Part shown: piece after piece, positions 11,695 through 11,961 of the stretch
How the letters are laid out: each line of letters begins with the position of its first letter
Numbering within the stretch: position 1 is the first letter of the stretch
Sequence record: NC_023719.1
Direction: 5' to 3' (one strand)
DNA: 64,000 nt
The notes under the pieces: generated by a model
What the model was told of the DNA's origin: nothing
What the model saw: the letters and a program-made list of their open reading frames with translations, nothing else
Databases searched by the model: none
Made by a program: the position numbers and the translations under genes

Positions 11695-11961
11695 GTGATT
11701 GAGATAATGCTAACTAAATTTGTAATTATTGGTTTGAATGATGGTTTAACTTCAGAAACTGTTGTAGATTTTTTAAATTTGACAAATGAATTTACTTCTT
11801 CAATTATTCTTAATAAAAGAGGACACGAAGCGAATGCGAAGAATATGATGGAGTTATTAGCTTTGTCGGTTAGAAAAACTGAAGAATTAACAATTCAAAT
11901 TGATGGAATTGATCAAGTTGAAGCGATTGAAGCTATTTATAAGTTTTTATCGAATGAATGA
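11695..11961 (+). CDS. HPr/Crh-like protein lacking His15 and Ser46 equivalents
   Basis: GL...F....N.FTS.I.L.K.G.E.NAK.MM.LL.L.V...EE.TI..DG.D..EA aligns with the HPr/Crh family. Confidence 0.85.
   Translation: MIEIMLTKFVIIGLNDGLTSETVVDFLNLTNEFTSSIILNKRGHEANAKNMMELLALSVRKTEELTIQIDGIDQVEAIEAIYKFLSNE

Follow-up and report, generated by a model that had tools for sequence, protein, structure and literature searches.

HPr (PtsH) and Crh are central to carbon regulation in Firmicutes. HPrK/P binds both HPr and P-Ser-HPr, and helix 1 of HPr contributes to the interface (1KKL complex). Arg17 of HPr contacts CcpA in addition to Enzyme I (EI), an S46D substitution in HPr mimics P-Ser, and Crh uses strand 1 in domain-swapped dimerization. 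In HPr, His15 sits immediately before helix 1, and the residues with the most EI contacts are Arg17, T16, and A20 (PMC8509676). CcpA binding requires the Ser46 phosphate (PMC9631020), and the methylglyoxal synthase MgsA is inhibited by nonphosphorylated Crh, not by Crh-Ser-P (Landmann 2011, as summarized in PMC9631020).

The protein gp197 of phage G belongs beside these two. Crh of Bacillaceae (B. subtilis; PDB 1ZVV, 1MO1, and 1K1C) resembles it in length (84 to 85 residues), in fold (TM 0.97), in lacking His15, and in the F-T-S motif at residues 29 through 31. The two are only about 33% identical, however; Crh has Gln15, Arg17, Pro18, Ser46, and Gly49, whereas gp197 has Thr15 and none of the other four. 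The crh gene sits in the yvcI-yvcL-crh operon, while gp197 is phage-encoded in a different context. HPr shares with gp197 the PF00381 domain and the open-faced β-sandwich but bears the phosphocarrier signature G-[LI]-H-[AT]-R-P; gp197 lacks His15 and Arg17 and, in phage G, Ser46. HPr of the host, B. megaterium (1RZR), is less similar to gp197 than Crh is (27.8 bits, E = 2.5e-5, 23% identity). Because it has no His15, gp197 is not expected to carry out phosphotransfer from EI to EIIA.

Locus and fold of gp197

The window analyzed here is a 64,000-nucleotide stretch of the giant Bacillus phage G (NC_023719 / JN638751), to which a 2.9-kb query centered on this locus aligned with 100% identity; its coordinates, used throughout, become record coordinates on addition of 124000. 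GenBank places the gp197 coding sequence (84 residues plus stop codon) at 11707 through 11961 on the + strand (record 135707 through 135961) with the note "PtsH-like", so the HPr resemblance is already on record and is not new. A sequence-only reading of this DNA had instead taken the enclosing open reading frame, 11695 through 11961 (+), which opens with GTG at 11695. That frame is present, but translation starts at the conserved ATG at 11707: the GTG falls inside the ribosome-binding site GAGGTGA (11693 through 11699, +), 7 nt before the ATG, and is not conserved, whereas the N terminus read from the ATG is MLTKF in all four orthologs.

A strong intrinsic terminator, in which a T-run comes after a stem of 12 bp (11566 through 11593, +), lies 3′ of gp196 and separates gp197 from the upstream tail-fiber module. 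It is kept in orthologous loci, where the stem shows compensatory changes (CTGGTGGTA/TACCACCAG in phage G versus CTGAGAAT/ATTCTCAG in other related phages). Between terminator and gene is a conserved AT-rich intergenic stretch of ∼100 nt (11600 through 11692, +), the presumed promoter region; it has no match to a sigma-70-type consensus on the + strand and may be a phage-specific promoter. Two wastewater metatranscriptomes (X8 and X12) each contain one ∼200-nt contig corresponding to 11436 through 11647, with 0 and 2 differences, respectively; these cover the 3′ end of gp196 plus the terminator but include no part of gp197, for which no run provided RNA coverage. A soil metagenome (X1) contains a near-identical phage G with an identical gp197. 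The annotation of the 64-kb window includes no PTS, HPrK/P, or CcpA-like gene.

The proposal that gp197 is a genuine member of the HPr/Crh family is borne out. It matches Pfam PF00381 (PTS-HPr) at 53.5 bits (cut-off 23; E = 2.5e-14) and marginally passes TIGR01003 (48.4 versus a cut-off of 47.9), which the ortholog P0003 just fails (47.3). The best NCBIfam model for every family member is NF010354 (PRK13782 "Crh"), which we take to be the Crh-type equivalog model; gp197 remains below its cut-off (51.8 versus 123 bits), which the Gln15 Crh-like protein P0154 passes at 145.8 bits. When solved structures are searched by sequence, five B. subtilis Crh entries come first (E = 1.8e-9 to 3.5e-9), ahead of all HPr; the top match, 1zvv_W (1.8e-9), aligns without gaps over residues 5 through 82.

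An AlphaFold2 model built on 130 homologs (pLDDT 96.6, pTM 0.85) has the β-α-β-β-α-β-α topology of the canonical HPr open-faced β-sandwich. Foldseek superposes this model on Crh from the CcpA-Crh-DNA complex (1ZVV, chain 1zvv_J) with a TM score of 0.97 and an rmsd of 0.7 Å, and on many HPr structures with TM scores of 0.87 to 0.96 (0.93 for B. anthracis HPr). The HPr fold is thus retained; the sequence-only reading had likewise seen that fold-defining residues are kept.

A small family in G-like phages

We searched 1.84 billion representatives exhaustively with phmmer, and 5.8 billion clusters twice by word index. Only four proteins were nearer to gp197 than ordinary HPr and Crh are, giving a family of five, all on contigs of G-like phages. 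Their identities to gp197 are 85% (P0002), 81% (P0003), 71% (P0004), and 48% (P0005). No further member came from searching 5.8 billion proteins with a profile; in IMG/VR, phage G itself is the only family match, and there is none among JGI metagenome contigs. The next-best profile matches outside the family are bona fide Gln15 Crh proteins.

The contigs of P0002, P0003, and P0004 share neighbors with the phage G stretch around gp197. The full order, collagen-like protein, small open reading frame, HPr-like protein, 55-residue membrane protein, and CCA-type nucleotidyltransferase, is seen on contig L002, and parts of it on L004 and L005. Two of these contigs carry an additional open reading frame of 133 to 134 residues (L002, 10447 through 10851; L005, 643 through 1044) between the gp198 homolog and the nucleotidyltransferase, which has no assigned family and is absent from phage G.

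P0005 lies elsewhere. Its gene, on a 2-kb contig (L006, Logan SRR13933255), stands between homologs of gp583 and gp587 and beside a NusG-like antiterminator. For each of the other three genes of this contig, the top or sole match among phages is a gene of phage G (gp582, NusG-like, 35%; gp583, 47%; gp587, 37%), which assigns P0005 to a distant G-like phage. Since it occupies a different gene block from gp197, the HPr-like gene has moved within the G-like phage lineage. In phage G the corresponding slot holds gp586, which we considered as a diverged second copy and rejected, as it is not HPr-like.

Phylogenetically, the five phage proteins group in a single clade (SH-aLRT 95), within which P0005 branches off as sister to the remaining four (98). 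The tree, built on 88 columns, does not put this family inside the Gln15 Crh clade and supports no particular position for it among HPr and Crh. His15-less HPr paralogs also occur in bacteria: 56 of the 125 nearest nonfamily homologs lack His15, and 2 of the 125 (P0047, with Q15/D46/E49, and P0145) lack Ser46 as well. Such degenerate paralogs are ordinary in bacteria, where they are cellular, small stand-alone genes in varied contexts; the phage family, in contrast, is a separate clade with its own invariant residues. Among metagenomic proteins, P0006 (2,555 residues) has an unusual poly-HPr architecture of 15 HPr-like stretches and matches gp197 with E = 7e-14.

HPr-like genes are rare in phages. 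INPHARED was searched with tblastn for other examples, and two non-G records were opened, the remaining matches being unannotated. Both proved to be bacterial DNA: "Acinetobacter phage MD-2021a" (L011, CAKLQH020000014.1) carries yhbJ-ptsO, thrS, and infC, and MT835581.1 (L010) is a bacterial chromosome fragment with ffh, rpsP, rimM, and trmD. Their HPr and NPr genes are normal and cellular rather than viral. BFVD holds only three weak metagenomic phage models with an HPr domain (TM 0.63 to 0.67). In the literature we found no report of a phage HPr-like protein or of a viral protein that targets the HPr/Crh node, and gp197 is not mentioned in the main text of the 2025 phage G multi-omics paper (PMC12484599).

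The former phosphorylation sites

In the gapless alignment, residues 13 through 18 of gp197 read G-L-T-S-E-T against G-L-Q-A-R-P in Crh, and residues 43 through 49 read N-A-K-N-M-M-E against N-A-K-S-I-M-G. Both replacements named in the sequence-only reading are confirmed: codon 15 (11749 through 11751, +) is ACT (Thr), so no PTS phosphate can be accepted on His15, and codon 46 (11842 through 11844, +) is AAT (Asn) in phage G. The model places the former His15 site right before helix 1 (residues 16 through 26) and the former Ser46 site right before helix 2 (residues 47 through 53). That reading had not listed Glu17 (codon GAA, 11755 through 11757, +), where 68% of homologs have Arg, Glu49 in place of Gly49, or the replacement of Ala16, Pro18, and Ala19. 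The signature H15-A-R-P-A has become T-S-E-T-V, and comparison with the 125 homologs shows that the G clade has other residues in place of H15, A16, R17, P18, A19, V23, A26, G58, and E70. Changes in the helix 2 region comprise G49 to Glu, G54 to Ser, and I47 to M, T, or S; the N43-A44-K45 loop and the helix 2 hydrophobic residues M48, L51, and L53 are kept.

Across the family (phage G, then P0002 through P0005), position 15 is T/S/N/N/N and in no member His. The codon is ACT in phage G, AGT (Ser) on L002, and AAT (Asn) in the other three, AAT being the likely ancestral state. Position 46, in the same order, is N/S/D/N/S (AAT, AGT, GAT, AAT, and AGC), and all the residue changes at both positions are reachable by single-nucleotide steps. 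The Ser46 context is K-S-M-M-E in P0002 and the canonical K-S-I-M-G in P0005, against K-N-M-M-E in phage G. Homologs that restore His or Ser had been named as what would refute the mimic; they are found for one of the two sites only. His never returns at position 15, whereas position 46 is Ser in P0002 and P0005 and Asp in P0003. The absence of Ser46 is therefore recent and lineage-specific, and does not define the family.

In HPr/Crh, a Ser, an Asn, and an Asp at position 46 signal opposite regulatory states, and not all of them would be tolerable if the function hung on one phospho-state there. All ten residues found at positions 15 and 46 in the five members fall within S/T/N/D, the classical helix N-cap set. 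Given that both sites directly precede helices in the model, this pattern suggests that the two positions may now be under structural (helix N-cap) constraint only.

These observations bear on one possible use of gp197 in the host, as a constitutive "unphosphorylated Crh" that would inhibit MgsA whatever the activity of host HPrK/P; the toxic methylglyoxal bypass would then be blocked and carbon kept in glycolysis during infection. We regard this as quite improbable. The Asp46 of P0003, phosphomimetic in HPr, should abolish such binding, phosphorylatable Ser46 is kept in P0002 and P0005, and gp197 scores far under the cut-off of the Crh-type model. On the other side, gp197 is most like Crh by sequence, NCBIfam model, and structure, has no switching-off at position 46 in phage G, and would correspond to the MgsA-inhibiting form of Crh, the nonphosphorylated one, as that form is summarized in PMC9631020.

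Selection, surface change, and candidate partners

Pairwise dN/dS among the four close orthologs is 0.11 to 0.25 at dS 0.5 to 1.1. This purifying selection supports the view of gp197 as a maintained gene, and gp197 is therefore not decaying. A functionless passenger, i.e., a captured host gene decaying after loss of its active site, would account for the disappearance of both the catalytic and regulatory residues and of the active-site signature, and for the near-neutral helix 1 described below. It is nevertheless scarcely credible: the frame has stayed open in all five phages despite divergence to dS of about 0.5 to 1.4, the low overall dN/dS falls to 0.10 outside helices 1 and 2, the ribosome-binding site, upstream terminator, and intergenic region are conserved, and the confidence of the gp197 model is very high (pLDDT 96.6).

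Constraint is uneven along the protein. In helix 1 (codons 15 through 28) the pooled dN/dS reaches 0.92, compared with 0.20 in helix 2 (codons 46 through 56) and 0.10 in the rest; the values for the two helices rest on 14 and 11 codons, respectively, in four sequences compared as nonindependent pairs. The exposed helix 1 positions 17, 20, 21, 24, 27, and 28 are all variable, with charge reversals at 17, 21, and 28, while the buried residues F22 and L25 are invariant. The canonical contact face, for which we assume a list of positions based on HPr structures in general, is variable at 10 of 16 positions versus 21 of 68 elsewhere (Fisher p = 0.024); among exposed residues only, the proportions are 9 of 13 versus 13 of 41 (p = 0.024), with exposure classes, including those of positions 5 and 7, that we presume from HPr structures in general and background residue polarity rather than coordinates. 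The pattern in helix 1 fits relaxed constraint on an old interface or, equally, host-specific or diversifying adaptation of that interface.

Helix 1 is the main partner-binding helix, and its nearly neutral rate argues against faithful mimicry toward the conserved EI or CcpA. A decoy of this kind would sequester CcpA, the master regulator, or stop the PTS at its first step, and the fold does superpose on CcpA-bound Crh (TM 0.97 to 1zvv_J) with the general shape of the binding face kept. However, CcpA binding needs a Ser46 phosphate (PMC9631020), where phage G has Asn46; Arg17, among the top EI-contact residues (PMC8509676), is Glu in gp197; A16, P18, and A19/A20 are replaced too; and the helix 1 surface is unconserved. 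We consider such a decoy highly improbable. With position 17 being Glu, Lys, or Thr and never Arg in the family, and with the exposed helix 1 face free to change (dN/dS 0.92), the suggestion of a mimic aimed at EI or CcpA is not supported.

HPrK/P is a less improbable target, though still an unlikely one. As a canonical-face decoy or pseudosubstrate, gp197 would occupy the host enzyme and lower Ser46 phosphorylation of host HPr and Crh, relieving CcpA-dependent catabolite repression and keeping PTS uptake running in infection. Binding could be compatible with any of the three residues at position 46, Ser as substrate, Asn as dead-end analog, and Asp as product mimic; the N43-A44-K45 loop and M48, L51, and L53 of helix 2 are retained; Crh proteins, the nearest relatives by profile, are substrates of HPrK/P; and a fast helix 1 could mean adaptation to different hosts. 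Against this, helix 2 has G49 replaced by Glu, G54 by Ser, and I47 by M, T, or S, and helix 1, which contributes to the HPrK/P interface, has exposed residues that are not conserved.

The phospho-dead decoy that the sequence-only reading had put forward, a candidate titrant of HPrK/P, EI, CcpA, or RapZ/YvcJ-type partners, therefore stands in part. The HPr/Crh family membership, the loss of His15, the loss of Ser46 in phage G, and the maintenance of the gene are upheld, whereas the Ser46 loss is not conserved and the helix 1 face and Arg17 have changed. The broader proposal that a giant phage uses a phosphorylation-proof HPr/Crh look-alike against the host HPr/Crh signaling node, for example by blocking HPrK/P or MgsA, is in our view doubtful. 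If it is true, then during infection carbon catabolite control, and possibly also the repression of sporulation by glucose, would no longer follow the metabolic state of the cell; no viral antagonist of the Gram-positive catabolite-repression switch would precede gp197, and the fast helix 1 would be an arms-race interface.

We tentatively prefer, at a little short of an even chance, another reading: that gp197 is a phosphorylation-dead HPr-fold binding module whose functional surface has shifted from the classical face. It would be a phage-borne "pseudo-HPr" in which the HPr fold is complete, the phosphotransfer signature is gone, and, in phage G, Ser46 is gone as well. Such a protein would be neither a phosphocarrier nor a Ser46-P-dependent corepressor; with both phospho-sites lost, it would act, if at all, only by stoichiometric protein binding. 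From the near-neutral helix 1, the conservation of the rest, and the residues Phe5 and Ile7, we infer that the function no longer runs through faithful mimicry toward EI or CcpA. The selected surface would instead have moved off the classical HPr/Crh face to a lineage-specific interface, which might serve self-association or a new partner, either a host protein or the putatively cotranscribed membrane protein gp198. The binding-only action, the surface shift, and any link to gp198 are all steps that we infer.

Phe5 is invariant in the family and found in 0 of 125 homologs, which have T, K, or E there; Ile7 is likewise invariant, with Ile in 11% of homologs. Strand 1 positions 3, 5, and 7 are polar in homologs, and the alternation of the HPr sheet turns them to the solvent-facing open side. 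An exposed strip of hydrophobic residues, Phe5 and Ile7, would therefore lie on the open sheet face, at the strand through which Crh dimerizes. Other family-invariant residues that are rare in homologs are L10, T30, S32, E41, Q70, and E84.

Several points weigh against the shifted-surface module. A decoy interface adapting to particular hosts would explain the rate in helix 1 equally well, the coupling to gp198 is missing on the contig of the most distant member, and the retained M48, L51, L53, and N43-A44-K45 loop would allow HPrK/P binding. Were gp197 to bind a host HPr/Crh partner, it would represent a new route of phage metabolic take-over, perhaps extending to the decision to sporulate, in which interference by phage G is already suspected. 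Were it repurposed through a new surface, it would be a natural example of a signaling fold stripped of its chemistry, with phospho-sites turned into helix caps. The claim is at present modest, because the homology is noted in GenBank, His15-less paralogs are common in bacteria, and even the closest phage relatives do not all share the Ser46 loss.

Neighboring genes

The candidate partner gp198 (11971 through 12138, +) is an open reading frame 3′ of gp197 encoding a 55-residue orphan protein, predicted to be a membrane protein. By eye it has two hydrophobic segments and a short basic loop that bears a conserved T-G-R-D-L-F-F motif. Its start ranges from overlapping the stop codon of the HPr-like gene to 10 nt past it in phage G, L002, L004, and L005, a tight or translational coupling; small genes often lie this close together in phages. 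The gene is absent beside P0005 on L006, and outside the four close phages no relative was found in 5.8 billion protein clusters. Neither gp198 nor the other neighbors matched a Pfam, PHROG, or PADLOC family.

Further genes of the window have features of their own. Downstream, gp202 (14131 through 14691, +) encodes a small ATPase of 186 residues with matches to AAA_21 and, in PADLOC, to C-terminal portions of two defense-system ATPases, AriA and PtuA (E down to 1.5e-13); this truncated ABC-type ATPase might act in counter-defense. Upstream lie gp193 through gp195 (9554 through 11310, +): gp193 has a long Ser-rich low-complexity C terminus, gp194 repeats a motif resembling V-I-D-M-R-K-Q-I-S-P-N about four times in tandem, and gp195 ("tail fiber protein") has collagen-like G-x-y repeats.
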